From assembly GCA_002104905.1 (NCBI GenBank), contig MCFE01000121.1, forward strand, positions 1 to 64,000: a DNA stretch of 64,000 nucleotides, given 5' to 3'. The position numbers and the translations under genes are program-made. Below, piece by piece: positions 1 through 45,900 of this stretch. The notes beneath the pieces were generated by a model. That model was not told the origin of the DNA and ran no database searches. It saw only the letters and a list, made by a program, of their open reading frames with translations. This DNA is from Basidiobolus meristosporus CBS 931.73. Its lineage: Eukaryota > Fungi > Basidiobolomycota. Positions within the stretch are counted from its first letter, which is position 1, and every line of letters starts with the position of its first letter.

Positions 1-1204
1 CACTATTTCAATTGCGCGATAATTAAGCACTGCTGCTTCCGTTCAATAAACCCTTCTTATAGCATGTATGTGGTTTGGTGCTCTCGAGAAAGACCTGCTT
101 TTGATAGTTGCGTGGATGATAAGCATCCTGTACTCTCGGCCAAGGTCTGGGCGCTGAGATCAAGGCCCATCGGAGATGTGAAGGCTCCACAAGTGTGCAT
201 CTCCAGTGTCCAGGTCAATCCCCAAGTCATATTGTTAGGTAAAGCTATTTCTGACAAGTAAACCTTCCATATGATCATTAGACTTGATCAGCCTTTGAGC
301 ATTACTCAACTGGCTCGCGTGACCCTTCGATCCTCCATGTACTAATCAAATGCTAGCTACATGGGCCTAACCAAGCAATCTCTATGCTCATTGGTTCAGC
401 TCAGAATGGGGCTTAGCACGTTTTTCTTCTTTTTTGATTTTTCCTGATTCATGATGCTATACTCTAAGAGAATTTTTTGCCAACCTATTGGCCAGGTTGT
501 ATAAGTGTTAATTGTTATTTGTTAAGCCGTACACACTCGGGTATTGCGAAGTTCTAGAGGAGCATGCATGAAGGTAGGATCTATTAGGGTAACTCAAATG
601 CCATTAGCGGTATGGTTAATCGATATTCCAAAGGTCTGAGTTATTGCTGAAATATGCAGTGAAAACACTAATGCTACTGCATTCTCGATACTGTTGACTA
701 TTTAGAGGTATGCCAAACCACATTGACATTCGGGAACAGCTGGGATTATAATTTAGCTGCGCCAAACTGTCTCACCAGGACATTGCATCCACTGTATAAT
801 TTCTCCTCGACACTTGGTGAAGGATACCGACTTTCCCTGACTGAAGCTGACAATTTGCCCCCAATGTTGTAGGCATCTGTATAGGCTCTTCTAAGCTGTA
901 AAGGAAGAGTCTTATGGATAAGCCACATTTGAAGGCCAGCGTGATCGTGATTCCGAACTCCTTGGAAGATAGTATTACGCTTTGGGTATTTTCTAGAAGC
1001 TGCAAGGATATCCAATGGTTACCATTTAGAATCCATGCATTCCACTACCTGAATTGCCACAATAGGTGAACTCAACCAGACGCTACTAAATTAGGTCGAA
1101 TTCTCGGCTTGCTATCATTGTTGGTAACGAAACGTGATCTCTATCCTGGGAAAATTGAACTACTTTAAAAGCACAGCTGAGGGCCGTGCTTTCGTCAAGA
1201 TATC

Positions 1205-2598
1205 ATGAAGCTTTCAGCCCTTTTCCTCTCGCTTACCTCGCTGTTCGCAGTCGAAGGTGCTTTCTCAGGCAATGCACAACTGGGCCAGCCTCCCCGATAA
1301 TGGGAGTAAATTCATTTCTTTCAAGACAGATGTCAAGTCTGTTCCTGAATTTAGTCCCAACCAAACTTACTGGGCAGCCATCGCCTGGAACAACGGATAC
1401 ATGGGAATGCAGACATGGGCCAACAAACGTGTATTCCTCTTCTCTCTCTGGGACAACAACAATGGAAAAGCAACCATAGTGGAAACATGCAAGGAATGCG
1501 TGACTAGTCGCTTTGGCAACGAAGGCACTGGATCCCATATGCAGTATTTCTATCCATGGCTTGATGGAGTGGATTACGGCTTTCGAATTGACTATGAAGA
1601 GGATGGTGATTATTTGGTCTACACTGCTCAGCTACGTATTGATGGCGAATGGATGCAATTTGGTAAATTGCGTGTTATCAACGACAACTTAAACAGCGGT
1701 CTTGGCTACTTCTACCAGTTTCTCGAAAATCCGCAAGGAATCAGCAATGGTGTACGGGTGGGCGTATGGAGTAAACAAGCTTACAGACGTGAAGGCAGCA
1801 AGTACTGGTACCCTGCACTGGGTGGCTCTATAACGTACACATATCCCGGGCCCGACGGCACATGGGGCTCTGGTCTAACAGAAAATCAGACGGCAATCTG
1901 GATGTCTATCAACGGTCCAGCTGGCTATCATGGATATAATAACAAGCCCGAACAGTGGCAGTGGTATCCCTATGATGCCGATAATCTGGGAATAGACATC
2001 GTTGTTGCAAATAAAACTGATAGACGTTGTGGCTGGTTCGGAGATGTGATGCATCAGTGCCAGCCTGGTTACTGCTGCTCCAGTTATGGCTACTGCGGTA
2101 CCACCGATGCTTACTGCAAAGGCTCATCTAAGCTGGAATATGACGCCCCCGTAACAAAGCACCGGCCTCAGGTTAGGAAGAACGCAAAGGCAGAAGGAGT
2201 AAAAACCAAGTCCCATATGCACTCCAGGGCCGGAGTTTTCTAAATTCAAACTTGCCAACAACGCCGGTAGCTGTACCTGCACTAGGGACTCAGCAGACAT
2301 ATACATCGATGATTTCTTGGTTGCTTACCAAAATCAAGGATATTTGTGGGATGAGGCTGCTTGGAGTTCGGGCTCGGCCCTGTTTGACTATAAGGGCAAG
2401 AGCGCTGCTGGTAAAGACTATGATTTGCATGTTGAAGTGCAAACTCAGAAGCCTATGAAGGAAGGTGAACAAATTGGTGGACCGCTCTATGAGTGTTTCC
2501 AGCAGTCGGAGAAGCAACCCAGCTGGAGCAACGTCCAAATCCCTAAAAAATGCATCCTGGATGTCGACTCAGTCTCTGTTATTGCCACCTTCAATTAA
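1205..2598 (+). CDS. Secreted DUF3472-family protein with CBM18 (hevein) chitin-binding module and unknown C-terminal domain; two +1 frameshifts (pseudogene or consensus error)
   Basis: ATG 1205 gives signal peptide MKLSALFLSLTSLFAVEGAFS; this frame stops at 1298-1300. The 1257-2243 ORF carries DUF3472-like motifs TYWAAIAWNNGYMGMQ, RVFLFSLWD, SRFGNEGTG and YQFLENP, then CGWFGDVMHQCQPGYCCSSYGYCGTTDAYC (2028-2117). A further open frame runs 2203-2598. No introns evident. Confidence 0.8.
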
Positions 2599-3299
2599 GC
2601 ACATCTACCTCTTCATCACTCTCATATCACTGCTATTAACCATGTGCAAGGTGAATACAGTGTCATCCAACAGTACAGCTGCAACGTGTTACACAAAAAT
2701 GCACCATTAAATATGAATTTTTTTCTTTGAGCGACGTTTTAATCGGTACTGGTTGGATCACATCTTCAGTCGATGTTTACACTCAAGGGTTTGATCACTA
2801 CCAAACATGGCTATTTTTCGTTGACTTTCTGGGACTTATTGTGTGCCGTACCAGCATGCTTTGATGGTCACAACTCCATGGAACCGACCAGGAAATCGTT
2901 TTCAACGGCCACCTAAAGTATGTGATCTCGTGGCCGTTTTTCCGGATTCGGCTTGATATAAATTTTGGTTGAGTTGGATGTTTTTGTATGGCGCGCTGTG
3001 TGAACGAGCCAGGTACCCGATGAAACTCCTATCAGCGCATTCCATTTTTGCTCAGCTTGGATTTCGATCATAAGCTCCCACGTATCACCCCTCGATTCGG
3101 TAACTAATTACCATATGCTATGCGTCAGACATCACGAGTACCAAATAATGGAAATGATTGGCCAGGACTATTACCATCGAAAGTTATCTCTGCACCTTTA
3201 GTGCCGACTAATTTGTGGATTGAAACACAGGTTGGTCGTCCGCGTTAGCGGTTTCTTCCAACAAATGATGATTGCGCGAGCAGTTTTCATCCGATATTT

Positions 3300-5400
3300 A
3301 ATTGCTTTCTACGTACATTCTTTCTAATCCTCATCTAAAAGTCTCTGCTGCGTGTTTCTTACTCCCATGGTCTCCTTGACTAAGAATAGTCACCATGATA
3401 AGATGAATGATTTCTTCTGTATTTACTATAGCACTTGACTAGCAAATATCAGGTATTTTGCAAAACTCCAGAGAGTATTTGGATGCAATCTGGAGAATAA
3501 GACAAATATATGGTACTCACCAGTTATCTTATTGTGCTCAAATATGGAAATGTTACTCTCAGAATAGCATTGTGAAGCTTATGATGGAAACACCTTAAGT
3601 GATATCTTTGTTAATGATATAAATATATGTAGGCTTTTGTAAGAATCACTCAAAATATATTAGTGAGGGACCTAACAGTGTGCTTACAAAGCTTTAGGGC
3701 TTTACACAATATTCGACTATTCTTATGTTCTAGGTGCTTTATATTTGATAAGTATGTTTGAGGTGACTACTAATAAAGAGTCTGAGCAGAAAATGTTGGG
3801 TCTTATTAGTTATGCGCTATAACTATCCTAATGATATAATCTTAATATGGGTATAGATGTGCAATACCTTCCTTCACTACAAGTTGGTATCATTATGGAC
3901 TGATCACTGCATATTCTCTTTCTTTCTCACATTAGATACATACCAGCCTCCTGTGCTCCTGTGTATTGTCTGGTTAAAGCCTCTGGTCAAAACTTCTTAC
4001 CAGCAGACTCTCCTCATGTTTTTACTTCTATCTATAGACTGATTTATTTCAATTAAGGCATTACAAGCAACATAGTATTAGTTGCTGATGACCAATATAT
4101 GTCACTTGCCATGTGTGTATGCCAGTCCCAAACTCATGTCATATCAGAAGCTCCCTTAAATTCATGAGTTAAAAGAGTCTTTTGCTTGATCTTTCCCTTT
4201 TACTGCTTTATTGGGAGCTGTGTAACCTCTATTATTTATCATATGATATATTCTAAACATCCTAGTCTTTTGACAATTGTATTTTCATTCTTTTGGTTGC
4301 CACTCTAAAGAGCTGCAGTTGCTTACCAATAAGCATGTTACAATAACGGAGTGAATTGTGGGCATTTCAGCATATTCAATGAGTCATCAAATTGCTTCCT
4401 TGATTACCAGCAGCTCTTCAACTCACCCAGAGAATAGCTGTTGTGTTGTAAGAACTATATCCTGACAACAAGGACTTACCTTGCCTTGTTCTGTAGCCCT
4501 TACATGAGTTTTCAGGCTTGAGTCTTATGTGTATTTCAGCTGGTGTTCTGGTTGTAGTGTTCATCAGTATTATGCTGTGTGAATACCTATTGAGTTATTG
4601 ACCTGGACTATCATTATGTGTAGACCAAGGATCACTCAGGCACAGTAACTTCTTGGGCATATGTCTACTTAATCTAAGAATGCTTCAAGGTTGAATACTA
4701 GCAGCTCTAGCCCTATAGATTGCATAGGCTTTTGAAGGTATTACACAAGCATTTTGCCATTTTCTGATCAAACATCTGGCAGGAATATGTGTATTAATGT
4801 AAGCTACAATTGATGCTGAGTAGATTTTATGGCTCATACTTAATAATTTATTCAATGGAAAAGCAGTGTTGATATTTTTAAATGGTCTTGGCCAGATAAG
4901 CACAAGAATATATGCCCAGAGAAGTCCCAAAAATGTGTGTACAAAGTTAGGGGGTGCTTGGATAACACTGAGAAATCTCATGCTCTGGGGACCTGATATT
5001 TTGGTGAAAATATTGTAGGTATATCCAAACAGGGAATTTAATCAAAACTCTCTAATATTTGTAAATAGTGGACTAGAAGATCAAGTTAGGTGGATGTCAT
5101 GGTGTAATCGCAAAATTTACAACACAACTGTAGAACAAGTCAGCATAGATTACCAAGCAGTCCCTAGTTTAAAGCAGTGTGAGTGTCTATTGGTAATATT
5201 TCTGACTCTCTTTTGAGAAATCCATACAGCCATTTCATAGCCTACTGTACAGGTTTTGCAAGGCTCTAGGTAGTATTGGAGGTAACTTGGGCAGCTAGAA
5301 GAAATTCACATTATTCGGTTGTTATTTTATTGAGTTAAAAAGTTACTGTTACTTTATGGAGAAACTTTATAAACTGATGATAAAAGTGTCTGAGGGAAGG
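3300..5400 (-). mobile_element. Highly decayed transposon remnant, possibly pogo/Fot1-like (Tc1/mariner)
   Basis: AT-rich, CpG-poor, many stops. Minus strand 5238-5209 reads MKWLYGFLKR, resembling the W-x2-3-FLKR motif of pogo/CENP-B HTH domains. No TIRs or intact DDE domain found. Confidence 0.3.
4787..5124 (-). repeat. Old diverged LTR related to copia family A
   Basis: Shares ATATTTTGGTGAAAATATT, TGTGTACAAAG/GTCCCAA-type blocks and the terminal TTTACAACA (5124) with family-A LTRs. Left boundary approximate. Confidence 0.7.
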
Positions 5401-5826
5401 CTCTGGTAACCTGCGTGCCAAGTCTGGGGGCTTTTGCGCAAGCTTGAGAATATCAAACACCTCTAGACGTTGACTAATTGTGAGAACTAACTAATATATG
5501 ACAAACTAAATATTAGTAAACAGTTCATAACTTGGCGGTAACATAAGTAGAATCAAATGTTATATGAGTGGCTTAGGCGTAAGCTAAATATTCGCAATAG
5601 CAGAAAGGTAAGTGTGATGTTGAATTTCTGTATTAGTGCCATACACGGCATAGGATTGCAATGAATATAGCAATCTGCATAAGAGTCATTATGGCCTTCA
5701 CGCTCCAGCCAAAGCTTTGCTACTGAGGCAGACATACAAATAATGGCTTGAAATACTCTTTCTAAAATATGAGTGGGGGACTTGTGTAAGCAATAAAACG
5801 ATAACTTTATTCATGAAGTGCAACAG

Positions 5827-6648
5827 TCAGGCATTAATTGCATGACTATATTCATCCATAGCGCAGTGATTGTAGTTAAGCCAAACATTTACCACATGAT
5901 TGCAATCCTCAGTCCCCAGTGGATTTCCGTCAAAGGCCAGATAGGTACCTTCTCCAGACGGGATTACACCGGCGCCCCAGCAAGGAATGCAGCAGGCTTG
6001 AGAGATGTAGCCGCCCCAATTGGGATAGCAAAAATCACTTCCTTCAATGCGATAGCACTGTCTGCTATAGATACCCTTTCGCGTTTGGTTAACAGTCCCA
6101 CCAAAATCCTCCAGGAACTGGTAGATTCCAGTGTCGGAATCGAGGCTATAATTGCCAAAGCCAATGCCTTTGATACTGGCAAAAAAGTGCCATTGATCAT
6201 TCACCCTAAACGAGGCGGTGAAGACGGTATCGTTGCCCACCCATTCGGCTTCGATTTTCACGCGGTATGTAACACCTGTTTGCCAATGATAGTTCATAAA
6301 GGCATGGGTACCCCAGCCCCCCATCTCATAGAAGGATGTGTGCCAGACATTCTCGCCCATCTTGATGACTTCGGTCGTGGTGTTCTTGAGATTCCATACG
6401 GAGAAGATAAGCACCCTGTCCTCGGAAGTATCCAACGTCTGAAACCCAAAATAGCCAGTTCCAAACCCTGCAGGGTTCCAGTAGGTGGTCGGAGGGGCCA
6501 TGCCGTCAGGGATCAATAGATCGGACTCAAAGCTCTTCACTGGCCCAACGTTCCAATTCGGAAAGTCAGGATCGTTGTACATTGCGGTACATCCTACAAG
6601 AAGCCCTAGCACTAGGACTAAGGTTAGAGTGCGGATTTTGCTAAACAT
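5827..6648 (-). CDS. Secreted DUF3472-family protein (273 aa, intact, intronless)
   Basis: Signal peptide MFSKIRTLTLVLVLGLLVGCTA; motifs TYWNPAGFGTGYFGFQ, RVLIFSVWN, YHWQTGVTY, YQFLEDFGG, RKGIYSRQ. Collinear with the 1257-2243 protein. Confidence 0.88.
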   Translation of the reverse strand: MFSKIRTLTLVLVLGLLVGCTAMYNDPDFPNWNVGPVKSFESDLLIPDGMAPPTTYWNPAGFGTGYFGFQTLDTSEDRVLIFSVWNLKNTTTEVIKMGENVWHTSFYEMGGWGTHAFMNYHWQTGVTYRVKIEAEWVGNDTVFTASFRVNDQWHFFASIKGIGFGNYSLDSDTGIYQFLEDFGGTVNQTRKGIYSRQCYRIEGSDFCYPNWGGYISQACCIPCWGAGVIPSGEGTYLAFDGNPLGTEDCNHVVNVWLNYNHCAMDEYSHAINA

Positions 6649-7131
6649 AATAATGTCTGACTGCCGAGACGACTACGGCTATTTATACATCAGTTTAATA
6701 GCTTTTTTCTCGCGCATTTCCATTTGCATTCTATCTACACCAATGCCATTGCTCAGTCTAAATTCAGCCACAACTTCCTTTGGCACGTCTCACTCAACAA
6801 GGCTGAAAATCCACGTGCTAGAGATCGTCTTCATACTTTGACTCCGTGGAGAAAGATATCGGTAAAAGCTTGCTACGGTGCCACAAAAGCCTTCAGTGGC
6901 TTGAATGAGGAGTCAGGCACTTACCAAATGGCATCTCTGCCTGAACAAGAGAAATCAGGCTTATCCCATGTGACTAGTCTGGCACTCTTCTTCGCGCAGT
7001 TGTCGCTTGAGATGTGATATGCTTCTTTCCAGAGAGTATTCCATGGATTCGTCACTTATTCTAGAACGTTTGTATACTCCCACAGAGCAGCAATATAAGA
7101 CGGCAATTCAGCGCATTCAGAATTCCTAACA

Positions 7132-12009: not shown

Positions 12010-15000
12010 TGTTGTAAGAATTTGTAATTCCACCTAAATATTTACCTAACTTGGTCACTTGGACTATTACCTACATATCCTATAGAATACTGACCAAATT
12101 CCTTGTTGGGATTTGCTTAGAATATTTTCACCAAAATATCTGGTGCCCAGAACATGAAAATTCTCAAAGTTGTCCAAACAGCCCCATACTTTGCACCCAT
12201 GTTCTTGGGACCTTCCTAAGCTTATTTTTGTATTTGCTATACCACGACTAGGTAAAAGTATAAATACCATGCTAAAATTCTATCAATCATTAAGTGATAG
12301 CCACATAAGCTACTTGTTCTCCCAATCACTTCCAATGTCTCCAAGGCTTTTACAACAGGCTATGAGCCCTGAGCTGTTACTCACTGAAATGTCTACCACT
12401 GCTATTACTGCAACCTTCCCTCTCCTGAAAATTGGGATGGATCTAACTATCAAGTGTGGAAGGTGACAGTAAGATGCTGCTACAAGAAATAGGCCTTTAG
12501 ATATTGCCATGGGAGAAGAATGCCCTTCTAAGAAAGTAGGAGAGGCAGCCTTAATGTATTAGAAGAAAGAACACAGTGCTTTTAGCTGCATTTGCCTTAA
12601 TGTTAAAGACAAAATGCTAATTCTATGCTCAACAGCAAAACATCAAAGAATGCCTGGAAGGGACTAGAAGTCACATACCAGTCATGTTCAGCTGCTAAGA
12701 GAATGTATCTTAGACAAATATTCTTCACTACAAAGATGCTGCCAGAAGAAGATATGAAAAATCAAATTAACAGAATTACCAAGCTTGTGGACGAGATGGA
12801 ATCTGGGGGCATAATAACTACTGATGAGGATGTGATAGTCACCAAACTGAATTACCTTACCAACAAGATTCAATGCCTTGTATCAGTTGTAGAGTCCAGA
12901 ATTGAAGAGTTGACATTAAATTGCATATATTGAAGGCTCCTGCATGAAAATTAAAGAAAATCAAATGCCAACAAGATGGAAGAAGAAAATGCTCCAATAA
13001 GCAATGAAAACCAGCAGAGGAGGTACCCAAGACCCTTTAAAGGCAATAGCCGCCTGTTTTGCAACTACTGCAAAAGGAAAGGGCACACATCAGACCAGTG
13101 CATTAATAGAAAGCTAGTCAGCAGAAAAAGCCTGTATATGGAAATGCTGCAGCAACTGAAGATAGACTTGATATATACACTAAGTATGATCACAAACAAG
13201 AATTCTCAGTTATGGTATATTGACTCTGGAGCATCTCAACACTTTACAAACCAAAAAATACTTTTTACTCAACATCAAGAAATTCCAGTTAGGAGCAAAT
13301 TCACGGGTAACAATTGAACACTTTATGCAGTAGCAGAAGGATTTATTCAAGTAAACCTTGCAGTGAAGGAGAAAACACATTTACCTTCAAAAAATACTCT
13401 ATGTACCAGAAATAGCCAAGAGCCTACTATTTCTCAGCAAGGCCACTGCAGAAGGACTCAGTTTCAGCTTTGATAATCTGGATGCAGGATCACTGCTGAA
13501 AATGGTGCCTATGTTGCTTTGGGTTTCAGAAATCAGAATCTATAGAAGTTGACTTATATTTCATCATATCAGGAATCCAATATTAGTGGCTTAAAAGCAA
13601 ATACACCAAAGCTTTGGCACAGGAGATTTGGACACATTAAATTTGATTATTTGCACAAAATGATCTAGGATTAGTTAACTTCAAGAGTCAAAATTGATCT
13701 CCCAACTAGTTTGGAGCACTGTGAAGCATGCATATATGGGGAACAAGCCAGAAAACCAATTAAGAGCTCTGATATAATCAAAACTAAGAATAAATTATAT
13801 CTAATTTACTCAGATCTATGTGGACCTATGCGTGAATTATACTTAGGCAGAATGAAGTATTTAAGCACTTTTACTGAAGATGAAACAAGAGGCACAGGGG
13901 TCTACTTCATGGAGAGAAAGGAAGAAGCTCTGTCTAAGCTTAGGGAGTTTAGAGCCCTGGTGGTGAGAGAAAATGTTTAAAAAATCAAGTATATGATCCA
14001 TGATCAAACATCATCCTATGATTTTTGGGCAGAATTGGTTGCCACAGCTGTATACCTTAAAAATAGGAGTTACAACAGAATACTTTGTGAATCTGCCCCA
14101 TTTGAACCATGGTATCAATACAGACTTATGTTTGACAAATATTCAAAATATACACAAAAAATGGTATCAGATTATGACAAAAATCTGATCTCAAATCTAC
14201 CAGTAGTCAGGATTCAATTGGAACAAAACTATGAGATTTCTTTTCACTCTAGAGGACTCAACAACCATAGATCAGCTCTAGTCAGTGCCCAGGTATATTT
14301 CAGAAGTAATCATTTCAGTATCACAAGCCAGGAGATCCAATGGACCAGATATAACCCAAATTACCATAGCAATAAGGGTACAAGCTTAGCCTATGCCTAT
14401 TTAGTCCATATTGCTGAACCCCAGACTGTAAAAGAGGCCCTAAGTTGCCCTCAGATAAAGTTTTGGAGATCTGCAAGGACTGAGGAGTATCAGGCCCTGA
14501 TGGAAAGTAAAACTTGGGATTTAGTTAAATTACCAATCATCTGGAAATCAATTGGATGTAAATCAGTCTTCAAGACAAAATATAAGGCTGATGTTACAAT
14601 TCAACAATACAAAGTAAGACTTGTGGCCAAAGAATACTCTCAAATAAAAGGACCTGACTTTACTGAGATCTTTGCAACAGTAGCCAAGTTTAATTCCATC
14701 AAATTAATATTGGCTATATCAGCCATATAAGAATTTCTTTTACTTCAAATGGATGAGAAACTGCATTTCTGTATGAGGAACTTGATGAAGACATGTACAT
14801 GAACCAGCCTGTTGGGTTTTCTGATCAGGATAACCCCCATTTGGTCAGCAAGCTTAAAAATTTCTATATGGTCTCAAATAATTACCAATAGCCTGGAATT
14901 GCAAGATAGATTCTTATTTGGAATCTTTCAGTTTCCAAAGGGGTACTGCTGACTATGACATATACTATAAGCCAGATAGAGCAAATCCACCTCTACTAGC

Positions 15001-15063
15001 TCTATATGTGGATGATCTTATTATAACTGCTGTTAACCAAGAAACATTAGAAGAGACTAAACT
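12010..15063 (+). mobile_element. Degenerate Ty1/copia family A element (5' LTR 12010-12357, PBS, gag, protease, integrase, partial RT)
   Basis: LTR TGTTGTA...TACAACA followed by GGCTATGAGCCC; broken ORFs with AKRMYLRQIFF, CNYCKRKGHTSDQC, WYIDSGASQHF, YSDLCGP, YKVRLVAK. Many stops and deletions. Confidence 0.9.
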
Positions 15064-18000
15064 TGCTGTAAAAATTTGTATTTCCACCTAAATATTCACC
15101 TAACTTAGTCACTTAGATAATCACCTTCAAATCCTAGAGAATACTGACCAAATTCCTTGTCGGGATTTACTTAGAATATTTTCACCAAAATACCAGGTAC
15201 CCAGAACATGAAAATTCTGAAAGTTGTCCAAACAGCCCCAAACTTTGCACACATGTTCTTGGGACCTTCCTTAACCTATTCTACATGTCTGTAATGCCAA
15301 GATCAGGTAAAAGTATAAATACTACTTTTACATTCAATAAATCATTAAGTGAAAACCACATAATCTACTTGTTCTCCCAATCACTTCCAATATCTCCAAG
15401 ACTCTTACAACAGGCTATGCGCCCAAGCTGTCACTCTCTGCAATGTCTACTACTGCTATTACTGGAATTTCTCCCTCTGCTGGAAAGTTGGATGGCTCTA
15501 ACTACCAAGTGTGGAAGGTGAAGATGAAGATGCTGCTGCAAGAAAGAAGCCTTTGGGATATTGTCATGGGAGAAGAATGCCCTCCTAAAAATGTGGGAGA
15601 GGAAGCCTTAAAGTACCAGAAGAAAGAACAAAGTGCCTTTAACTGCATTTGCCTTTATGTCAAGGACAAATTGCTAATTCAATGCTCAAGAGCAAAAACG
15701 GCAAAGAATGCCTGGAAAGCATTGGAAGACACCTACCAGTCATGTTCAGCTGCCAAGAAAATGTATCTGAGACAAAAATTCTTTACTACAAAGATGCTGC
15801 CAGGAGAAGAAATGAAAAATCTAATTAACAGAATTACCCTGCTGGTAGATGAGATGGAATCTGTGGGCATACCAACTACTGATGAGGATGTGATAGTTAC
15901 CATCCTGAATAGCCTGACAGATGAGTTTCAGGGCCTTGTATCAGCCCTAGAGTCCAGAACTGAAGATTTGACCTTAAATTACGTATATGGAAGGCTCCTG
16001 GATGAAGAATTAAGAATATCAAGCACCAATAAGAAGGAAGAAGAAAATGCTTTATTAAGCAATGATAACCAACAAAGGAGGTACCCAAGACCCTACAAAG
16101 GCAACAGCAACCTACTTTGCAACTACTGCAAAAGGAAAGGACACACACCAGACCGGTGACTCAAAAAGAAAGATAATCAGCAAAAGAAGCCTGAATATGG
16201 AAATGCTGCAACAACTGAAGGTAGACTATTCATATCTGCACTAAATATGACCACAAACAAGGATTCTCAGACATGGTATATTGACTCTGGAGCTTCTCAA
16301 CACTTTACACACCAAAAAGAACTTTTTACCAAATATCAGGAAATTCCAATTAAGAAGGTTTTCATGGGTGACAATAGAACACTTGATGCAGTGGGAGAAG
16401 GAACTATCCAAGTAAACCTTAGAAGCAGTGAAGGAAGCCATACACTGACCTTTAAAGAAGTACTCTATGTACCAGAAATAGCCAAGAACCTACTCTCTGT
16501 AAGCAAGGCCACAGCAGAAGGACTCAGTTTCAGTTTTGACAATTCTGGATGCAGGATCACTGATCAAAATGGTGCCCATATTGCTTTGGGCATCAGAGAT
16601 CAGAATCTATACAAGTTGACTTATATTCCATCATATCTGGAAGCCAATTTAAGTAACTTAAATGAAGAAACACAAATGCTTTGGCACAGGAGATTTGGAC
16701 ACATCAATTTTGATTATTTGCGCAAAATGATCAAAGATCAGCTAATTTCTGGAGTGAAAATTGATCCCCCAGCTAATTTGGAGCACTGTGAAGCCTGCAT
16801 ATATGGGAAACAAGCCAGACAACCATTCTAGAGCTCTGGGTTAATCAAAACTAAGAAAAATTAGATCCAACTCACTCAGATCTGTGTGGACCTATGCAAG
16901 ATTTATCCTTAGGCGGGATGAAGTATTTAATCACTTTTATTGATGATTATACAAGATACACATGGGTCTACTTCATGGAGAGAAAGGAAGAAGCTCTGTC
17001 TAAGTTCAGGGAGTTTAAAGCCATGGTGGAGAGAGAAACTGGTGAAAAAATCAAGAAAATACGCTCTGACAATGGTGGAGAATATACCTCAAAACTCTTC
17101 ATCCACTTCTGCAAAATTCATGGGATAAAGCAAGAGACTACTGTACCATACTCCCCACAGCAAAATGGAGTAGCAGAACAAGCTAACAGATCAATAATTG
17201 ATATGGCAAGATCTATGATCCATGATCAAAAATTATCCTATGATTTTTGGGCGGAATCAGTTGCCACTGCTGTATACCTTAAAAATAGGAGTTATAACAG
17301 AATACTTTGTAATTCTACTCCATTTGAAGCATGGTATAGATACAGACCAAGTGCCAAACATCTAAAAATATTTGGGTGCACAGCATATGCCAAAAAACTG
17401 GCCGGAAATCAGTCAAAATTTGAGCCAAAAAGTGTAAAATGCATATTTTTGGGCTACTGCAATGGGAGTAAGGCATACAGACTCTATAATACCAAAGCAA
17501 AGAAGCTGATCAAGTCCAGGGATGTGTTGTTTGATGAAAATTCAAAATTTTCACAAAAAATGACATCAGATGATGACAAAAATTTGATCTCAAGTCTACC
17601 AATTGTCAGGATTGAATCAGAGCAAAACAATGAAAATTCTTTCACTCCAGAGGATTCTACAACCATGGTTCAGCCAGAATCAGTGCCCAGGAATATCCCA
17701 GAAGTGATCATTCCAGTATCAAATTCCCAGAGATCAAATCGGACAAGAAATAGCCCAAATTACTATATCAATGAGGGTACAAACTTAGCCTATGCCTATT
17801 CAGTCCATATTGATGAGCCCCAGACTGTAAAAGAGGCCCTAAATAGACCTCAGACAAAGTTTTGGAGATCTGCAATGACTGAGGAATATCAGGCACTGAT
17901 GGAATATCAAACTTGGGACTTAGTCAAATTACCAATCAACCAAAAATCAATTGGATGCAGATGGGTCTTCAAGACAAAATACAAGGCTGATGGTACAATT

Positions 18001-19177
18001 GAAAGATACAAAGCAAGACTTGTAGCCAAAGGATACTCTCAAACAAAAGGACTTGACTATACTGAGACCTTTGCACCGGTAGCCAAGTTTAATTCCATCA
18101 GATTAATATTGGCTATTGCAGCCAAATATAAGTTTTTTATTCATCAAATGGATGTAAGAGCTGCATTTATGAATGGAGAACTTGATGAGGATGTGTATAT
18201 GGACCAGCCTGATGGGTTTGCTGACCAAGATAACCCCCATTTGGTCTGCAAGCTTAAAAAGTCACTATATGGTCTCAAACAATCACCGAGAGCCTGGAAT
18301 TGCAAGATAGATTCTTATTTGGAATCTTTGAGTTTCAAAAGGAGTAATGCTGACTATAGTATATATTATAAGCCAGATAGAGCAAATCCAGTTCTATTAG
18401 CTCTATATGTGGATGATCTTATTATACCTGCTAATAACCTAGAAACATTGAAAGAGACTAAATCCAGCCTATCTAAGGAGTTCAAGATGTCTGATTTAGG
18501 AGAACTTAGTTACTACTTAGGGATTAAGTTCTCCATAGACAGAAGTACCCAGACTATTACCCTAAGCCAATCCAAGTATATTCAAGATATGCTAAGGAAG
18601 TACCAAATGGAAGACTGTAAACCAGCAGCTACCCCAATGGAGACAAACCTTAACTTGGTCAAAACTCAGCCAATTCATGAGAGCTTGGTACCATCTGAAA
18701 GCCCTAACTTTTCTTATCAATCTATAGCTGGCAGTCTGATGTATATCATGCCTGGGAGACATCCTGATACCTTATACTCAGTGTGAGCTGTCAGCCAGCA
18801 TGACCAGATATATGGATCTGATCATTTTGCAGCAGTTAAATGGATCTTAAGATACCCAAAAGGAGCTGCTGATATCTGCTTAAGGTATACCTCTAAGGAT
18901 TTAGAGCAGGATCTTGTAGGGTACTCTGATGCTGATTGGGGACAAAATTTAGAAGACAGAAGATCCACCACAGGATACATCTGTCTGTACTGAAAAGGAG
19001 CAGTTTCATGGAATGCAAGAAAGGAACCAACTGTAGCACTTTCCACCTGAGAGGCAGAGTATATGGCAGCCTGTGAAGCAACAAAAGCGGTAATGTAGTT
19101 AGGAAAGCTATTAAAGATTTAGGCTTATGTCATAAAACACTTATTACTTTATTTCAAGATAATCAAGGATTTATATC
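15064..19177 (+). mobile_element. Ty1/copia family A element, least decayed copy, inactive (5' LTR 15064-15412, gag-PR-IN-RT-RH; no cognate 3' LTR)
   Basis: PBS GGCTATGCGCCC at 15413. Gag LDGSNYQVWKVKM and CNYCKRKGHTPDR(TGA); protease WYIDSGASQH; integrase RSDNGGEY and PQQNGVAE; RT YKARLVAKG and LALYVDDL; RNase H YSDADWG. Stops at 16157, 16829 and 18784, and a 1-nt loss in an A run near 16858. Confidence 0.95.
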
Positions 19178-32391: not shown

Positions 32392-33528
32392 ATGGCCGAT
32401 CAGGACCAACTTATCGCACAGTTCAACAGCATCACAGGAAGTGATGTGCAGAACGCCAAATTTTTCCTTGAAGCCAATAACTGGGACGTTAATGCGGCGG
32501 TCAGCAATTTCTTTGAATCAGGCGAACCAAATGTCGCCTCCAATTCCCCCAGTGAGCCTCCACAGCCACAGCCACAGACACAGCCCTCAGTGACTACCTC
32601 GCGACCAACCAGGGCTTCAGGCATCGCTACTTTCCACGATCTTGAAAAAGAGGATTCAGACGAGGAGAAGCAAAGCTACTTTACTGGTGGAGAGAAGTCC
32701 GGCATGTTGGTGCAGGATCCCAACTTGAAAAAAGAGAAATCAAACGCACTGGTCGATGACATCTTAAAAAAGGCTGCCGAGGGCGGAGAAAGTTACCCGC
32801 CTTGGGAGGAGGAGGAGGAGGCCCCAAGTCAACCACATTTCTTCACTGGTGCCGGTCGTTCTCTTGGTGGCCCGAGTGGTGATGCTTCCACAACTCAACC
32901 ATCCAGCTCACGACCCGCCAATTCCGCCACAGACAACACCCCTGTTGTGCGAAACTTGACCTTCTGGAGAAATGGGTTTAATATTGATGACGAGCCGCTC
33001 AGGAGCTACGACGAGCCAGAGAATCAAGAGTTCCTGCAAGCCATCAACCGTGGCCAGGCGCCTCTGTCGCATCTGAATGTTCGCCCTGGTCAACCAGTGG
33101 ATTTGCGGGTTGCCAAAAGACTGGACGAAGACTATATTCCTCCGCCAAAGGTGTTGAAGCCATTCAGTGGCTCTGGACAGAGGTTGGGCGGCGTTGCGCC
33201 TGCGATAACTTCCTACAAAACCCCAGGGGCATTCCCAGAGTCGGATCAGCCACCAGCTCAGGTAGAGGAAGAGGTTAAGGTGGACGAAAGCCAGCCTGTA
33301 ACTTCCATCCAGATTCGTTTGGCTGATGGAAGTCGACTTGTCGGCAAGTTCAACCACAGCCACACAGTTGGAGATATTCGTCGCTTCATCAACTCCTCCA
33401 GACCCTCCGACATTGGCCGCGATTACACTCTCCAGACCTCGTTCCCCGTGCAGCGTCTGACCGATGATTCCGCCACTTTGGAGCAAGCATCACTGCTTAA
33501 TTCAGTTGTTATGCAACGTTATGCCTAA
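32392..33528 (+). CDS. SHP1: Shp1/Ubx1/p47 Cdc48 cofactor (UBA-SEP-UBX), single exon
   Basis: UBA (LIAQFNSITG...FFLEANNWDV), YFTGGEKSG, SEP (LTFWRNGFNIDD), SHP box FSGSGQRLG, UBX (IQIRLADG...FNHSHTVGDI...TSFPV). Confidence 0.96.
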   Translation: MADQDQLIAQFNSITGSDVQNAKFFLEANNWDVNAAVSNFFESGEPNVASNSPSEPPQPQPQTQPSVTTSRPTRASGIATFHDLEKEDSDEEKQSYFTGGEKSGMLVQDPNLKKEKSNALVDDILKKAAEGGESYPPWEEEEEAPSQPHFFTGAGRSLGGPSGDASTTQPSSSRPANSATDNTPVVRNLTFWRNGFNIDDEPLRSYDEPENQEFLQAINRGQAPLSHLNVRPGQPVDLRVAKRLDEDYIPPPKVLKPFSGSGQRLGGVAPAITSYKTPGAFPESDQPPAQVEEEVKVDESQPVTSIQIRLADGSRLVGKFNHSHTVGDIRRFINSSRPSDIGRDYTLQTSFPVQRLTDDSATLEQASLLNSVVMQRYA

Positions 33529-33979: not shown

Positions 33980-36900
33980 ATGCCTGGGGATCCTTCCTCA
34001 CACTCCCCGAGATTGGTTTCATCAAGCATCAACAGCAATAAATCATATAGAAACTCTATGCAAAAGTCGTTCGCCGGTACGTTCACACACCATTTTACCA
34101 ACTGAGAGTCCCATAAGGAAACGCTCCAAGCTTATTCTCCTGAGCAACGCTTAGATGGGCCAACGTTTCCTTTGGCTTACCTCCATTCAGCCCCCCCACC
34201 AATCCTTCCCCTCGCCGCTGGATATCCACTTTGTTAACGCCTTTGCCAACGAAACCCCTAGGTTCACGTGCCCAACAGAATAGAGCTCGCCTTGAAACTT
34301 CAAAGATATCCGGTCCGAAACCTTTGAATTTACCAAGCCTTCGTCGTGAGCATGCAACCGCACCCACGGTTCTGTCGGGTAGTTCTTGGCGGACGACACA
34401 TAGCGATTACAACCGGCAGGATCCTTCCCCCAGGACGGCCCCTTCTAACGATCCGAAGCACAGCACTCCAGTCACGAACATAAGAGCCTGGTCGAGTATA
34501 GTTCAGGTTCCTAGCAACACTATAACCGACGACGACTCTAGCCAAACCGCTGCTTTCAAACCAGGTAATGGAGGGTTTTCTCGACGACATTCACGGTGCC
34601 TCCGTTGACTAACTTGGCTTGCCTTTGATTTGAACGGAAATAGGGGACTCGCATGAGAAGGTAAGGGCACTAGTTTGGATAGCCTTAGGACGCGGAGAAT
34701 ATTCCTAGTCGACTTTGAAGATTTTCAGCACCGGGACCTCACGCTAATCCCTTCTTTTGCGTAGGGAGATGGGCTGGCCAAGTCGGACGATGAGGATAAA
34801 GGAGAAGAAAGAAACTGGGACGAGGTAATCTCTATTGCGCGTTCAGCGCGGTGAAAATATTGACATGAGCTGATATTTTGTGGTCGAACTTAGATGTCAG
34901 ATGAGAGTATTGACTTTTCAGTGGACGTTTTAGAATTCGCCGATGGCACTGTCAAGATTGATAAGATGGGGGAGGACAAAGTACCCAGCGATCCTTGGAA
35001 GCGACCGGTTAGCTCAAACCTTCCTCTCGACAACAGTACACCTCCACCACCACCACCGCCGCTACCACCATCTAACACATCGGAGGCCAAATCAAGGCCC
35101 AAACCTTCTTCCCCCGCTGTACTTGAGCCTCTTTCACCATTTGCTACGGATGCCGCACCGGCGACGGATCCCCACGAGAGCATCAACAAATCGCCAAATG
35201 ATCCAGGCTCAAACCATCCTAAGGAAACTCTCGACCACAATCACAGCGCGCTACCCAACGGAACCACGAGGAACGACTGGGCAGAAAAAGCAATGGCTTG
35301 CGCGGAGGACGGGAGCAAGAATCCATCTAAAGAGCTCTCATGGCGACGCCGGGCCCCTGTAGACAAATGCCCAGTCAGCCCCGAGAAGTTCGAGAATCAG
35401 TATCCGCATCGGTCAATCCATCCAGGAGAACATCATGGTGGATTGGACTGGAGATCATCATACGCGAACGGGAAGTCACGAATTGCTGGGCAGAATGCAC
35501 GCGGCCGAGATGATTTTGATAGATCGGAGTGTGATTCCAAGCGGGATGACAGGTGGGCGCATCAGTCGGAGGAGAACGATCAGGACCTTGATAAACGAGA
35601 GAACTGCGAACCGAAGGACCGTATGAAGTATTTCCAGGGGGAGAATCGTCGCACACCGAGGTTCAACCCAACCTTCGAAAAGAAAGGCCCCAGCATCTCC
35701 GACATCGACAAGATCATGTCCTCCATAAAACGCGAGCTATCCGCCAAGGGGACCTCCATTGAAGAAATGAAGTCCCGAGGGCCAAATGCCTCCAGCGAAC
35801 CCAATGAAAAGGAGAGAAGGAATTCTCAGGAAGTGGGGGAGGATCGGGAGTTGAGCGAGAGGCAGGAGTTGCTGGACGGTGGAGAGCCCGCGCTTTCTCC
35901 AGACCGCAAAGACTCCTCCTATTCGAGCCCACTTGTTGCTCAGAAGCCTCCCTCTTCACTACACTCCAACTCCACCCACATATCGAAAGTGTCGAGTGCT
36001 GAGCAAGTTGCTACGGGATGCGTGAGTAATTCGCGATCAAGCCCACCCGAACCCTCTCAAGATAAGAGTCGCAGCTGGGATACCGACAAATTAGCCCCAA
36101 AGCCCTTCCATGAGAACGGCCCCAACACAAACACAAACTCCGTTCCAGAGGCAGCTTCTCTCCATTCACAGGACAAACCCAAGAGAACCACAAGCGCCGA
36201 TCTCTCCCCAGGGCAGGCGTACTCGAGCAGCAACCGTCCCCGCAACGAGTCCTCATTCTTTTCCGGGAAACACGGCGTTGACGAGACGCTCAGCTCGACA
36301 GACGAGCCGGTGGACCCGTCGCTACTGCACCGTAAGGACGCCGCGAAGAACTGGATAGGGAAGGAAAGGAAGCTGCAGTTCTATTCCAACCGGTCAGATT
36401 CCTCCATCGAGATCGATCACAGTGCCCCGTTTACGTTTGGGAAGAAATACCTGTTTTCAAGCTCCCAGGATGAAGAGGTGTTGGGAGGCAAGAGCAAAGG
36501 TGCGTAGTACATGCTTATTAGCTGCAGCCAGCGCGCTGACATTGGTGACATTTGTGTAGCCTCGAAGCCTAGTCCGATCGGGGAGAAGAGGGGGGTGCTC
36601 GCGTTTGGAATCGATCTTGCCGAAGGTATTTACCACCACGACTGCAAACATGCGCATCACCCATCTAACCATCCGGTTTAGGCAGATCCCCCATCGCGTT
36701 CTTGGAGAAAGGAGAAGATAAGCAGCCATCCAAAGGTTAGTCACCTCCCTTCCTTCCCGTTTAAGATGCCAACCATCTGGGTAGTTTGGTGGATCCGAAT
36801 TTAACCGTCCTCTGTGTTGCATTACAATCAGCGGGCAAGAAGCACAGCACCTTCAACCAGTCGTGCAACGTGTTTCCAAAGGAATTCGAATCGATTGCTG

Positions 36901-38246
36901 GCAAATTGGGAAGTGTCGGATTCATGGTAGCTAGTGAAATCATCGACGACGCCGAGAAGCGCCCGACCGGTGACAAGGAAGGCCCCGGCAGCCCAAATGG
37001 CCAACAGGCAACGAAGCCATCCGGTAAATCGGAGGTATGCCTGCATAGAAGCGATCCTACGGAGGGTTTTACTAACCATGCTTCCCACCACAGGCTCGCT
37101 CCACTGGTGGCCCATCCGAATCTCGAATCGCGAGTTGGTCTCGTCCATCGAAAAACGACCATAGAAAAGCCTCTGCCGGCGGCCCCCTGCAAGACACACC
37201 CAAGGCTGCCTGGACAAACGAAAAGCCCATTTCGCTGGAGAACTCGAATCACTCGGATGCTGTCAACACCGGCTCTGACGACCCCAACAACACCAAGTCC
37301 TCAAAAGCGTCCCCTCCCCTCAAGGGTCGAGGTAATTCCGGTCCATCCTAAGGTTTCCCCACCTGCACCCTAACCCCCTCATCCGCCAGATCTAGGATAC
37401 ACCGCCTTCTCAAAAGCACCTCCCGGGAAGTCGAACTTCATGTACACTCCTCTCCCGCAAGAAATGGGCTCTCCAACGCTGTGGGTGAAGCCACACCCAG
37501 GCCTCAGAATGGCTCAAGGGGAGCCAGGTAGTATGGGAATGTCTCAGGTCCCCATGCTCCCGCCGTTGATGGATCCCTCGCAGGCGATGCCCCCTAGATC
37601 CCCGCAACAGCCGGTCAACACACAATACGTCCAATTCGTACCTCTAGCCATGCCGCCCCACCAGTTCATGCCGCCCTACGCAAACATGCCTCTTGCGCCA
37701 TATCCACAAATGAACATGACCATGGACGAGATGAACCAGGCTGGTTGGGTGATGCAGCCGGCCCCCATGGGCCAGTATCACTCCATGCCCAACAACCCGA
37801 ACTACCAGTACTCCAAGAGGGGTCACCACCACCACCATGAACGTTCACCCCAACAATCATTCCAACGAACCCCGCCCTACCAGAACCAGAACCAAAACCA
37901 GCACCGACCGCCAGCCCAAAACTTCCCGTACTCCCAACAGCCCCCGTACTCATCGAAACTCTCCGACCCCATCAACGCTTCGCCCCGTCTACCCAACACG
38001 AATATCCCCCCGCAGTTCCAGCGCCAGGCTGGCCTGATGACCTCCAACGCCCCACCCAACTACTCAATGTACAAGGGCGAGATGGACGGGATCCCGAGAA
38101 ACCCAAACCAAAGCCACCCACGCCACCTGAACCAGCGGGGTCGTGGGGCGCACGCCTGGTCCGGGATGAACCAGCGGCCGGGCAACGCGAACTACCCCAC
38201 GGGATTCGTTTCCAGCCATCGAGGAAATAGTCGCAACATGTACTAG
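33980..38246 (+). CDS. Large low-complexity PRRC2/BAT2-like protein (multi-exon; some junctions unresolved)
   Basis: BAT2_N-like PKPLNLPSLRREH and WDEMSDESIDFSVDVLEFADG (resembles the PRRC2 W...EEVDY..KLKFSD motif); Pro/Gln/Met-rich C-terminus. The first intron acceptor could not be resolved cleanly. Confidence 0.65.
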
Positions 38247-42918: not shown

Positions 42919-45900
42919 GTTGTAAGAGTCTTGGAGAAATTGGAAGTGATTAGGAGAACAAGTAGATTATGTAGTTTTCACTTAATGATTTATTGAATGT
43001 AAAAGTAGTATTTATACATTTAACTGGTCTTGGCATAGCAAACACATAGAATAGGCTAAGGAAGGTCCCAAGAACATGTGTGCAAAGTTTGGGGCTGTTT
43101 GGACAACTTATCTAATTTTCATGTTCTGGGTACCTGGTCTTTTGGTGAAAATATTCTAAGTAAATCCCAACAAGGAATTTGGTCAGTATTCACTAGGATA
43201 TGAAGGTAATGATATAAGTGACTAAGTTAGGTGAATATATAAGTGGAAATACAAATTTTTACAACAATCCCAATCAGCTAAATGTTCATACTGACTAGTC
43301 CTAACTTTGACCTAAGATATTCAAACTTGTCTCTAGCTAATGGTTTGGTAAATATGTCTGCAATCATTTCATTTGTAGGACAGTAAACTAAGCTAACTAA
43401 GGTATTTGCTATAGCTTCATGTATGAAATGATGTCTAATATCTATGTGCTTAGTTCTAGCATGAAAAGTTGGATTTCTACCTAATTGTATACATCCTTGA
43501 TTTTTTTGAAATAAAGTAATAGGCGTTTTTTGACATTGGCCTAAATCTGCAAGAAGTTTTCTTAACCACATTGCTTCTTTTGTAGCTTCACAGGCTGCCA
43601 TATACTTGGCCTCTGTGGTGGAAAGTGCCACAGTTGGTTGCTTTCTTGAATTCCATGAAATTGCTCCTTTACAGTAAAGAAAGGTGTATCCTGTGGTGGA
43701 TCTTCTGTCTTCTAAATTTCATCCCCAATCAGCATCAGAGTATCCCACAAGATCCTATTCTGAATCCTTATAAGTGTATCTTAAGCAGATATCAGCAGTT
43801 CCTTTTAGGTATCTCAAAATCCACTTAACTGCTGCAATATGATCAGATCCATAGTTCTGATTATGTTGGCTGACAACTCCTACTGAATTTGAGATATCTG
43901 GATGTGTTCCAAGCATGATATACATCAGACTGCTGACCATAGATTAATAAGGAAAGTCAGGGCTTTCAGATGGCACCAAGCTCTCTTGATTTGGTTGAGT
44001 TTTTGACCAAGTTAAGGTTTGTCTCCATTGGTGTAGCTGCTGGTTTACAGTCTTCCATTTGGTACTTCTTTAGTATATCTTGAATATACTTGGATTGGCT
44101 TAGGGTGATAGTCTGGGTACTTCTGTCTATGGAGAACTTAATCCATAAGTAGTAATTAAGTTCTCCTAGATCAGACATCCTGAACTCCTTAGATAGGCTG
44201 GATTTAGTCTCTTCCAATGTTGCTAGGTTATTGGCTTTTACATCCATTTGATGAATAAAAAACTTATATTTGGCTGCAATAGCCAATATTAATCTTATGG
44301 AATTAAACTTGGCTACCAGTGCAAAGTTCTCAGTATAGTCAAGTCCTTTTGTTTGAGAGTATCCTTTGGCTACAAGTCTTGCTTTGTATCTTTCAATTGT
44401 ACCATCAGCCTTGTATTTTGTCTTGAAGACCCATCTGCATCCAATTGATTTTTGGTTGATTGGTAATTTGACTAAGTCCCAAGTTTGATTTTCCATCAGT
44501 GCCTGATATTCATCAGTCATTGCAGATCTCCAAAACTTTGTCTGAGGGCTATTTAGGGCCTCTTTTACAGTCTGGGGTTCATCAATATGGACTGAATAGG
44601 CATAGGCCAAGTTTGTACCCTGATTGATATAGTAATTTAGGCTATTTCTTGTCCAATTGGAGCTCTGGGCATTTGATACTGGAATAATCACTTCTGGGAT
44701 ATTCCTGGGCACTGATTCTGGTGGAACCATGGTTGTAGAGTCCTCTGGAGTGAAAAAACTATCATTGTTTTGCTCTGATTCAATCCTGACAATTGGTGGA
44801 CTTGAGATCAAATTTTTGTCATCATCTGATGTCATTTTTTGTGAAAATTTTGAATTTTCATCAAACAACACATCCCTGGACTTGGTAAGCTTCTTTGCTT
44901 TGGTATTGTAGAGTTGGTATGCCTTACTCTCATTGCAGTAGCCCAAAAATATGCATTTTACACTTTTTGGCTCAAATTTTTACTGATTTCCGGCCAGTTT
45001 TTTGGTATATGCTGTACACCCAAATATTCTTAGATGTTCTGCACTTGGTCTGTATCCATACCATGCTTCAAATGGAGTAGAATCATGAAGTATTCTGTTA
45101 TAACTCCTATTTTTAAGATATACAGCAGTGGCAACTGATTCTGCCCAAATATCATAAGATAATTTTTGATCATGGATCATAGATCTTACCATATCAATTA
45201 TTGATTTGTTAGCACATTCTGCTACTCCATTTTGCCGTGGGGAGTATGGTACAGTAGTCTCTTGCTTTATCCCATGCGTTTTGCAGAAGTGGATCAAGAG
45301 TTTTGAGGTATATTCTCCACCATTGCCAGAGCGTATTTTCTTGATTTTTTCACCAGTTTCTCTCTCCACCATGGCTTTAAACTCCCTGAGCTTAGACAGA
45401 GCTTCTTCCTTTCTCTCCATGAAGTAGACCCATGCATATCTTGTATAATCATCAATTAAAGTGATTAAATTCTTCATCCCACCTAAGAATAAATTTTGCA
45501 TAGGTCCACACAGATCTGAGTGAATTAGATCTAATTTTTTCTTAGTTTTGATTAACCCAGAGCTCTTGTATGGTTGTCTGGCTTGTTTCCCATATATATG
45601 TAGGCTTCACAGTGCTCCAAATTAGCTTGGGGATCAATTTTCACTCCAGAAATTGGCTGATCTTTGATCATTTTACGCAAATAATCAAAATTGATGTGTC
45701 CAAATTTCCTGTGCCAAAGCATTGGTATTTCTTCATTTAAGTTACTTATATTGGCTTCCAGATATAATGGAATATAAGTCAACTTGCATAGATTCTGATC
45801 TCTGATGCCCAAAGCAATATGAGCACCATTTTGATCAGTGATCCTGCATCCAGAATTGTCAAAACTGAAACTGAGTCCTTCTGCTGTGGCCTTGCTTACA

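Follow-up and report, generated by a model that had tools for sequence, protein, structure and literature searches.

A DUF3472 gene pair of Basidiobolus meristosporus: a candidate CBM18-anchored di-glutamate mucinase and a paralogue with a displaced glutamate

The stretch of DNA analysed here (64,000 nucleotides, hereafter the window) forms the beginning of contig MCFE01000121.1 (161,866 bp) of the fungus Basidiobolus meristosporus CBS 931.73, with position 1 at the contig end. It carries two convergent genes, gene 1 on the forward strand and gene 2 on the reverse strand, whose encoded proteins are 32 % identical (E 3e-31), bearing out an earlier note on this DNA that had described them as diverged, convergent paralogues with a DUF3472 domain. 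We consider it somewhat better than an even prospect that proteins of the gene 1 type are di-glutamate O-glycoproteases (mucinases) steered by a chitin-binding module of carbohydrate-binding module family 18 (CBM18), with gene 2 a weakened or non-catalytic paralogue. Mucin-cutting enzymes govern how microbes enter and inhabit mucus. Their di-glutamate class dates only from 2024, when it was recognised in bacteria; if the interpretation is true, no fungus had, as far as literature searches show, previously been reported to possess a mucinase family of this kind. Those searches returned no mention of these Basidiobolus genes, of the CBM18 fusion or of Basidiobolus mucinases. The DUF3472 family itself is already known, and what is new here is a fungal expansion of it that carries a CBM18 anchor and includes a glutamate-losing subclade.

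A profile hidden Markov model search against Pfam located DUF3472 (PF11958) in both genes, as the earlier note had supposed: on the open reading frame (ORF) 1257-2243(+) of gene 1 with E 3.8e-40 (138.7 bits against a gathering cut-off of 24.8), and on ORF 5827-6648(-) of gene 2 with E 8.1e-29 (101.5 bits, same cut-off). A search of NCBIfam returned no match. The note's further description of the domain as one of unknown function is outdated. Pfam 38 names PF11958 after BPSS1860 of Burkholderia pseudomallei, a surface protein that serves host-cell attachment and virulence in mice (PMC7998038), and HC7, described in PMC13003899 as a Bacillus cereus K8 mucinase of the di-glutamate class whose CBM5 module lets it also act on mucins bearing Tn and T O-glycans, is likewise a DUF3472 protein. 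The HC7 structures (PDB 8PMU, 8PN3 and 8PN5; Narimatsu et al. 2024, Nat Catal 7:386, as cited in PMC13003899) are deposited under the chain name 'DUF3472 domain-containing protein' and match the family profile with E 7.5e-26. The label 'DUF3472' in a fungal genome need not, then, mean that function is unknown.

Gene 1 is interrupted in the window, and modelling and searches were therefore carried out on the protein of a natural intact twin (P0001, discussed below), the broken copy being left unmended; residue numbers for gene 1 follow P0001. In an alignment of 122 family sequences only two columns are near-invariant for glutamate. Comparison of the wild-type and E200A chains of HC7 identifies one of these, the glutamate of an F-x-E-N/D motif (E in 120 of 122), as Glu200; the other is the glutamate of an FGxEGTG motif (E in 119), which, from its conservation, we infer to be the second catalytic residue (residue 131 of HC7 by our own count). 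Gene 1 has both. Its Glu174, within a QFLEN motif (1725..1727, +), aligns with HC7 Glu200 in profile alignments to 8pmu and 8pn3, and its Glu106 occupies the first near-invariant column as part of FGNEGTG (1521..1523, +); the codons of both residues were checked. Both glutamates are kept throughout the gene 1 subclade (P0001-P0004 and P0158), together with conserved H, Y, Q, S, W and R positions, and this branch accordingly looks catalytic as judged by its residues.

The fold predicted for gene 1 agrees with this relationship. The gene 1 type alone was folded, as an AlphaFold2 (AF2) model of P0001 built on the 122-sequence alignment, and this model is confident at residues 20-260, with a predicted local distance difference test (pLDDT) score above 90 over the DUF3472 part. 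Its closest structural neighbour is 4qhw from Bacteroides caccae (Z 29.8, root-mean-square deviation 2.1 Å over 237 residues), followed by HC7 (Z 27.8 for 8pn3 and 27-28 overall when 8pn5 and 8pmu are included; 2.4 Å over 226 residues). The next tier is formed by neprosin (Z 15), GH16 (glycoside hydrolase family 16) lichenases (Z 13.7) and scytalidoglutamic peptidase (Z 12.9). Neprosin (family G3) and scytalidoglutamic peptidase (G1), together at Z 12.9-15.2, share with gene 1 the same beta-sandwich and an acidic pair on the concave sheet, but at 7-8 % identity and with other substrates the likeness is one of resemblance and not of membership.

Gene 1 also shares with HC7 an order of modules, in which a signal peptide and an N-terminal DUF3472 domain precede a small carbohydrate-binding module of chitin type. 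As the earlier note had proposed for one of the paralogues, gene 1 encodes a six-cysteine hevein/CBM18 chitin-binding module (2022..2123, +), identified by Pfam PF00187 (Chitin_bind_1) on ORF 1257-2243(+) with E 4.2e-8 (33.7 bits against a cut-off of 27.8) and by matches to hevein and lectin chains in the PDB. The core of the module, CCSSYGYCG, fits the pattern CCSxxGxCG, with Ser and Tyr at the sugar-contact positions. HC7 differs from gene 1 in having a CBM5 where the fungal protein has a CBM18 of eukaryotic type, so that, if the assignment is correct, a eukaryotic chitin anchor would stand in place of a bacterial one; gene 1 has, in addition, a fungal host and an extra orphan C-terminal domain, and its activity is a predicted one.

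Several observations weigh against the mucinase assignment. The fungal domain shares only about 21 % identity with HC7, and a plain phmmer search of the PDB with gene 1 did not find HC7; the second catalytic residue is assigned from conservation, as noted above; and the CBM18 and C-terminal parts of the P0001 model are of low confidence. Hevein modules bind oligomers of N-acetylglucosamine (GlcNAc), and any benefit of such a module against mucins is an assumption. BPSS1860, the other studied member of the same Pfam family and a secreted or surface protein that we liken to the fungal ones by family and description, is moreover described as an adhesin and not as an enzyme, its role being that of an attachment and virulence factor for which no enzymology is reported (PMC7998038).

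This last point raises the alternative that the Basidiobolus proteins are non-catalytic lectins or adhesins, in which DUF3472 would bind glycoproteins or glycans and, together with CBM18, cross-link fungal chitin to host or prey, for example when conidia or hyphae adhere. BPSS1860 is located on the cell surface, and attachment is lost in its mutants (PMC7998038); the domain is assigned, in the supplement to PMC11291939, to clan CL0004, the concanavalin-like lectin/glucanase clan; and gene 2 and three relatives (P0006, P0012 and P0013) have lost canonical glutamates, so that at least their subclade would fit a binding-only role. Nevertheless, the retention of every near-invariant polar residue in the gene 1 subclade, both glutamates included, is hard to explain without catalysis, and the nearest solved homologue of known activity is an enzyme. 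We regard the adhesin explanation as a minority prospect.

A second alternative, that the proteins are glycoside hydrolases or lyases acting on chitin or another wall polysaccharide, with CBM18 as a classical substrate-targeting module, corresponds to the chitin-targeted reading of the earlier note and appears improbable. Fungal and plant CBM18 modules are usually found alongside chitin-active enzymes, the deposition of 4qhw names it a 'putative two-domain sugar hydrolase', and the same fold recurs, at Z 9-14, in GH16 lichenases and in PL7 (polysaccharide lyase family 7) alginate lyases. Against this, the GH16 match is far weaker than that to HC7 (Z 13.7 versus 27.8) and comes at 4-6 % identity, the E-x-D-x-x-E strand motif of GH16 type was not seen in the 122-sequence alignment, and glycopeptides are the ligands of the only family member whose complexes have been solved.

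Under the preferred mucinase interpretation, gene-1-type proteins would be secreted O-glycoproteases. As in HC7, the peptide bond adjoining an O-glycosylated Ser or Thr would be hydrolysed by a pair of glutamates on the concave sheet, and proteins with dense O-glycosylation would be cut in their backbone. By means of the hevein/CBM18 module the enzyme would be held or positioned on polymers of GlcNAc, either in the chitin wall of the fungus itself or in the peritrophic matrix of insects that have been ingested, and the site of action would correspondingly be host gut mucus, with the enzyme kept on the fungal wall, or the chitin-plus-mucin peritrophic matrix of the insect. Bacterial and viral mucinases of enhancin type attack the peritrophic matrix in a comparable way. 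Two such substrates are plausible because of the life cycle of Basidiobolus, which is ingested with insects and lives in the guts of amphibians and reptiles (see, in part, PMC7466969). Since HC7 is a mucinase, the likely target is an O-glycoprotein (mucin) and chitin the anchor, and the earlier proposal of a chitin-targeted effector is therefore to be amended: surfaces composed of chitin and mucin, such as the insect peritrophic matrix, are plausible sites, but the homology points to mucin as the material acted upon. If true, this would give a gut-dwelling and occasionally pathogenic fungus a route for handling host mucus or the chitin-and-mucin lining of the insect gut.

Gene 2 (5827..6648, -) is an intact, intronless ORF of 273 residues that combines a signal-peptide-like N-terminus with DUF3472 and has eight cysteines in its C-terminal third. 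The public model of this gene (P0005, 251 residues) starts at the second Met and thereby drops 22 N-terminal residues (6583-6648, -), which are signal-peptide-like and end in a lipobox-like L-V-G-C; a signal peptide is present in the model of the B. ranarum orthologue (P0006), 54 % identical to gene 2, and its absence from P0005 is probably an omission. The active-site region of gene 2 differs from that of gene 1. Glu180, in a QFLED motif (6109..6111, -), is the equivalent of HC7 Glu200 by alignment, with the codon checked, but unlike HC7 the protein has no carbohydrate-binding module and no glutamate in the first canonical column, which is occupied by the Gly of E108-M109-G110 (6319..6327, -), with a Glu two residues earlier. 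The same G-for-E replacement is found in P0006, and in this orthologue pair the Glu sits one or two residues earlier.

Loss of the glutamates extends further in other members of the gene 2 subclade. P0012 of B. ranarum has Asp in the column equivalent to Glu200, and P0013 of B. meristosporus (ORX91636.1) has lost both glutamates and, in addition, the Tyr and Gln that are otherwise conserved; on these residues, P0012 and P0013 are likely pseudoenzymes. With Gly in the first column, the gene 2 branch looks to be drifting toward a binding-only or otherwise altered role, and gene 2 is, of the possibilities its residues suggest, more likely to be a weakened or non-catalytic glycoprotein-binding paralogue. 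If so, Basidiobolus would offer a natural series, from fully conserved sites to glutamate-less paralogues, for study of the change from enzyme to binding protein. A more elaborate account, in which an expanded set of di-glutamate mucinases of bacterial type gained a CBM18 anchor, one branch cutting mucins on chitin and the gene 2 branch forming an O-glycoprotein-binding pseudoenzyme, is put forward tentatively, and we would place it clearly below an even prospect.

Within the window, gene 1 is split across three reading frames, the protein of each piece being identical to the matching part of P0001. The first piece (1205..1252, +) holds the start codon and a signal-peptide-like N-terminus of 16 codons, corresponding to residues 1-16 of P0001; the second (1254..2243, +) holds the DUF3472/BPSS1860 domain followed by the hevein module, is 100 % identical to P0001 there and ends at an out-of-frame stop (2241-2243); and the third (2227..2598, +) holds an orphan C-terminal domain of 123 residues and the stop codon, corresponding to residues 341-463. 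The ATG at 1205 is consequently in a frame different from that of the DUF3472 ORF. In pairwise alignments with the intact copy each break is a frameshift caused by one extra C, at 1252 (break 1) and at 2224 (break 2). The possibility that a short intron links position 1205 with the DUF3472 frame was dismissed, as the GT..AG options are only 12 or 31 nucleotides long and the twin shows a plain one-base difference. The annotation in the contig record gives gene 1 a product of 437 residues. Two statements of the earlier note are hence only partly upheld. The intact twin is indeed a single ORF, as expected of an intronless gene, whereas the copy in the window is divided by the extra C residues; and the N-termini of both proteins, read from the sequence, are typically hydrophobic, as predicted for signal peptides, but that of gene 1 lies in a frame separate from the DUF3472 ORF.

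The intact twin occupies positions 3745-5136 of a locus on contig MCFE01001198.1 (L001) as an uninterrupted ORF of 463 codons. The segment shared by the two contigs (window 1-3165 and L001:2542-5707) is 98.9 % identical and ends abruptly at 3165, beyond which L001 carries uricase and ABC-transporter genes and not gene 2. Because L001 continues without gene 2 and only 3.2 kb is common, the two copies represent a segmental duplication and not simple alleles or haplotigs. They differ at 22 of 1771 non-coding sites (1.24 %), whilst their coding parts differ by six synonymous substitutions, at 1628, 1895, 2304, 2346, 2358 and 2565, and by no non-synonymous ones, against an expectation of 13.7 non-synonymous changes if both copies were drifting (P about 1e-6) or of 6.8 if one were (P about 1e-3). 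By this measure purifying selection has acted on both copies during almost the whole time since they separated, and the two breaks are in that case either very young or indel errors of the assembly.

Whether gene 1 of the window is a true, recently dead pseudogene copy turns on the same numbers. Two independent frame-breaking insertions are present, neither of them within a long homopolymer, and the copy lies at a contig end, within the segmental duplication bounded at 3165 and with retrotransposons next to it. The complete lack of non-synonymous change where 6.8-13.7 would be expected (P about 1e-3 to 1e-6) argues in the other direction, as does the fact that the two breaks are the sole indels in the 1.6-kb alignment to L001. 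Indels are the typical residual error of long-read assemblies, and the CBS 931.73 assembly, which we take to be of that kind, counts on the same side. On balance we rate a genuine pseudogene at not quite an even prospect.

The third piece of gene 1 was overlooked in the earlier note. All four differences from the twin within 2227-2598 are synonymous, and this part is coding for that reason. The C-terminal 123 residues have no Pfam match and found no homologue in a region search among proteins of 255-810 residues, and they have no counterpart downstream of the 84 %-identical paralogue P0002, which stops right after the hevein module. Weak feature matches of carbohydrate-binding-module type were obtained in Atlas at 0.90, with low recognition, and a single-sequence AF2 model of the region reached a pLDDT of 54. 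As far as these comparisons go, the segment is an orphan extension of this one lineage.

The gene pair belongs to a larger expansion. B. meristosporus has at least nine distinct DUF3472 proteins, with further ones in B. ranarum, which corroborates the duplication supposed by the earlier note; these proteins are predicted to be secreted and disulfide-rich. P0001, P0002, P0004 and P0005 are intronless by gene length. Genes of the P0002 type occur as an inverted pair (L007:1226-2218(-) and 6001-6993(+)), two divergent DUF3472-CBM18 genes of 330 residues whose products are one residue apart, each set in an arm of about 3.8 kb, with 94-95 % identity between the arms; the complete inverted arrangement is present on two contigs, MCFE01000486.1 and MCFE01000226.1, at 98.1 % identity (L007 and L008).

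The origin of this expansion was examined by an exhaustive profile search, which yielded 2294 DUF3472 clusters at E <= 1e-3. A first tree, built from the best 150 of these, places the Basidiobolus proteins in a group of 15 members, of which three further ones are also from Basidiobolus (B. meristosporus and B. ranarum) and the other six are metagenome or Logan sequences. A careful IQ-TREE analysis of 62 rows, read without a root, recovers nine Basidiobolus paralogues as monophyletic (support 99/97, and in 98 % of bootstrap trees), with the gene 1 and gene 2 subclades each supported at 100/99 and, as sister to the whole clade, a Logan sequence from a contig of 36 % guanine-plus-cytosine (GC) content (99/95). 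A branch with support 99/96 parts all eukaryote-like rows from 45 presumed bacterial ones; 20 of the latter were looked up, 11 carried a name, and all 11 were bacteria (Planctomycetota, Chitinophaga, Ferruginibacter, Verrucomicrobiota and Armatimonadota). The DUF3472 family is, consistent with what the earlier note had stated, overwhelmingly bacterial. Among the best 150 of the 2294 clusters Basidiobolus is the sole named fungus in or near its clade, which is confined to that genus among named fungi on this sampling.

Sister to the Basidiobolus group are also genes on a 76-kb contig of 41 % GC from JGI metagenome 3300047123, where at least six DUF3472 genes stand in tandem (L003:1101-17570) beside a copine-like C2 gene; this contig is eukaryotic. 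Several genes of the array have C-terminal extensions of 140-180 residues without a Pfam match.

Monophyly of the Basidiobolus proteins implies a single ancestor for all the paralogues before B. meristosporus and B. ranarum split, so that any transfer, judged by the tree, predates that split. The clade is not nested in any bacterial group of the 62-row tree, and neither a donor nor a direction is thereby shown. Acquisition from bacteria, as put forward in the earlier note, hence receives divided support: a patchy distribution speaks for it, but nesting in bacteria and a donor are both wanting; gene structure and composition give no uniform sign, the genes being intronless whilst their GC content (47.8-48.7 %) equals the mean gene GC of the host, 48.65 % (PMC7466969). 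An old transfer followed by expansion within the genus is the best reading of the tree, though not a proved one, and one lineage within that expansion gained a CBM18 of eukaryotic type, in keeping with the note's suggestion that a fungal chitin anchor had been added.

We judge it unlikely that the genes instead descend from an old eukaryotic lineage, inherited vertically or passed from eukaryote to eukaryote and lost from most fungi. The grouping of the Basidiobolus clade with eukaryote-like metagenome sequences, one of them beside a copine gene, its separation by the 99/96 branch from all sampled bacteria, without nesting among them, and a gene GC equal to the genome's mean would all be compatible with such a history. 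That the best 150 of the 2294 clusters include no named fungus of another genus in the clade or close to it runs counter to such a history. The genes are also intronless, whilst native B. meristosporus genes have a median of two introns and candidates for horizontal gene transfer a median of none (PMC7466969). It counts against it, too, that elsewhere among eukaryotes DUF3472 genes have been attributed to separate bacterial transfers: one or two are inferred for the centipede venom proteins in PMC7864903, and the cluster of the chytrid Rhizoclosmatium is scored as a bacterial transfer in the PMC11291939 supplement.

These centipede and chytrid proteins are the nearest parallels in history, being eukaryotic, secreted and, in the same two sources, ascribed to transfer between domains of life followed by duplication. 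They differ in their recipients, are probably the result of separate events, and many of the centipede proteins keep a DUF5077 domain; the accessible text on them mentions no CBM18 fusion, and neither Basidiobolus nor any other fungus is labelled in the accessible supplements of the centipede paper. By structure and sequence the best match to the DUF3472 domain of gene 1 is BACCAC_02064 of Bacteroides caccae (4QHW; Z 29.8, profile E 1.8e-107), which represents the two-domain DUF5077 plus DUF3472 type common in Bacteroidota and Planctomycetota, whereas all Basidiobolus members are without an N-terminal DUF5077.

The genomic setting of the pair is rich in transposons, as had been stated previously. 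ORFs of Copia-type long terminal repeat (LTR) retrotransposons (gag, integrase and RVT_2), some of them fragmented, occur at three places around it in the window (13993-18786, 43966-47120 and 56610-57785), and the two genes, at 47.8 and 48.7 % GC, stand out from surrounding DNA of 38-39 %. A 324-bp repeat, probably an LTR, is found at 15064-15387, 42943-43266 and 47222-47545 and also at the start of L001. An island of 47-55 % GC at 22-42 kb contains a p47/Shp1-like gene with UBA, SEP and UBX domains as a single intact ORF (32392-33528, +), with the neighbouring ORFs at 34894-36507 (537 residues) and 37440-38246 having no Pfam match.

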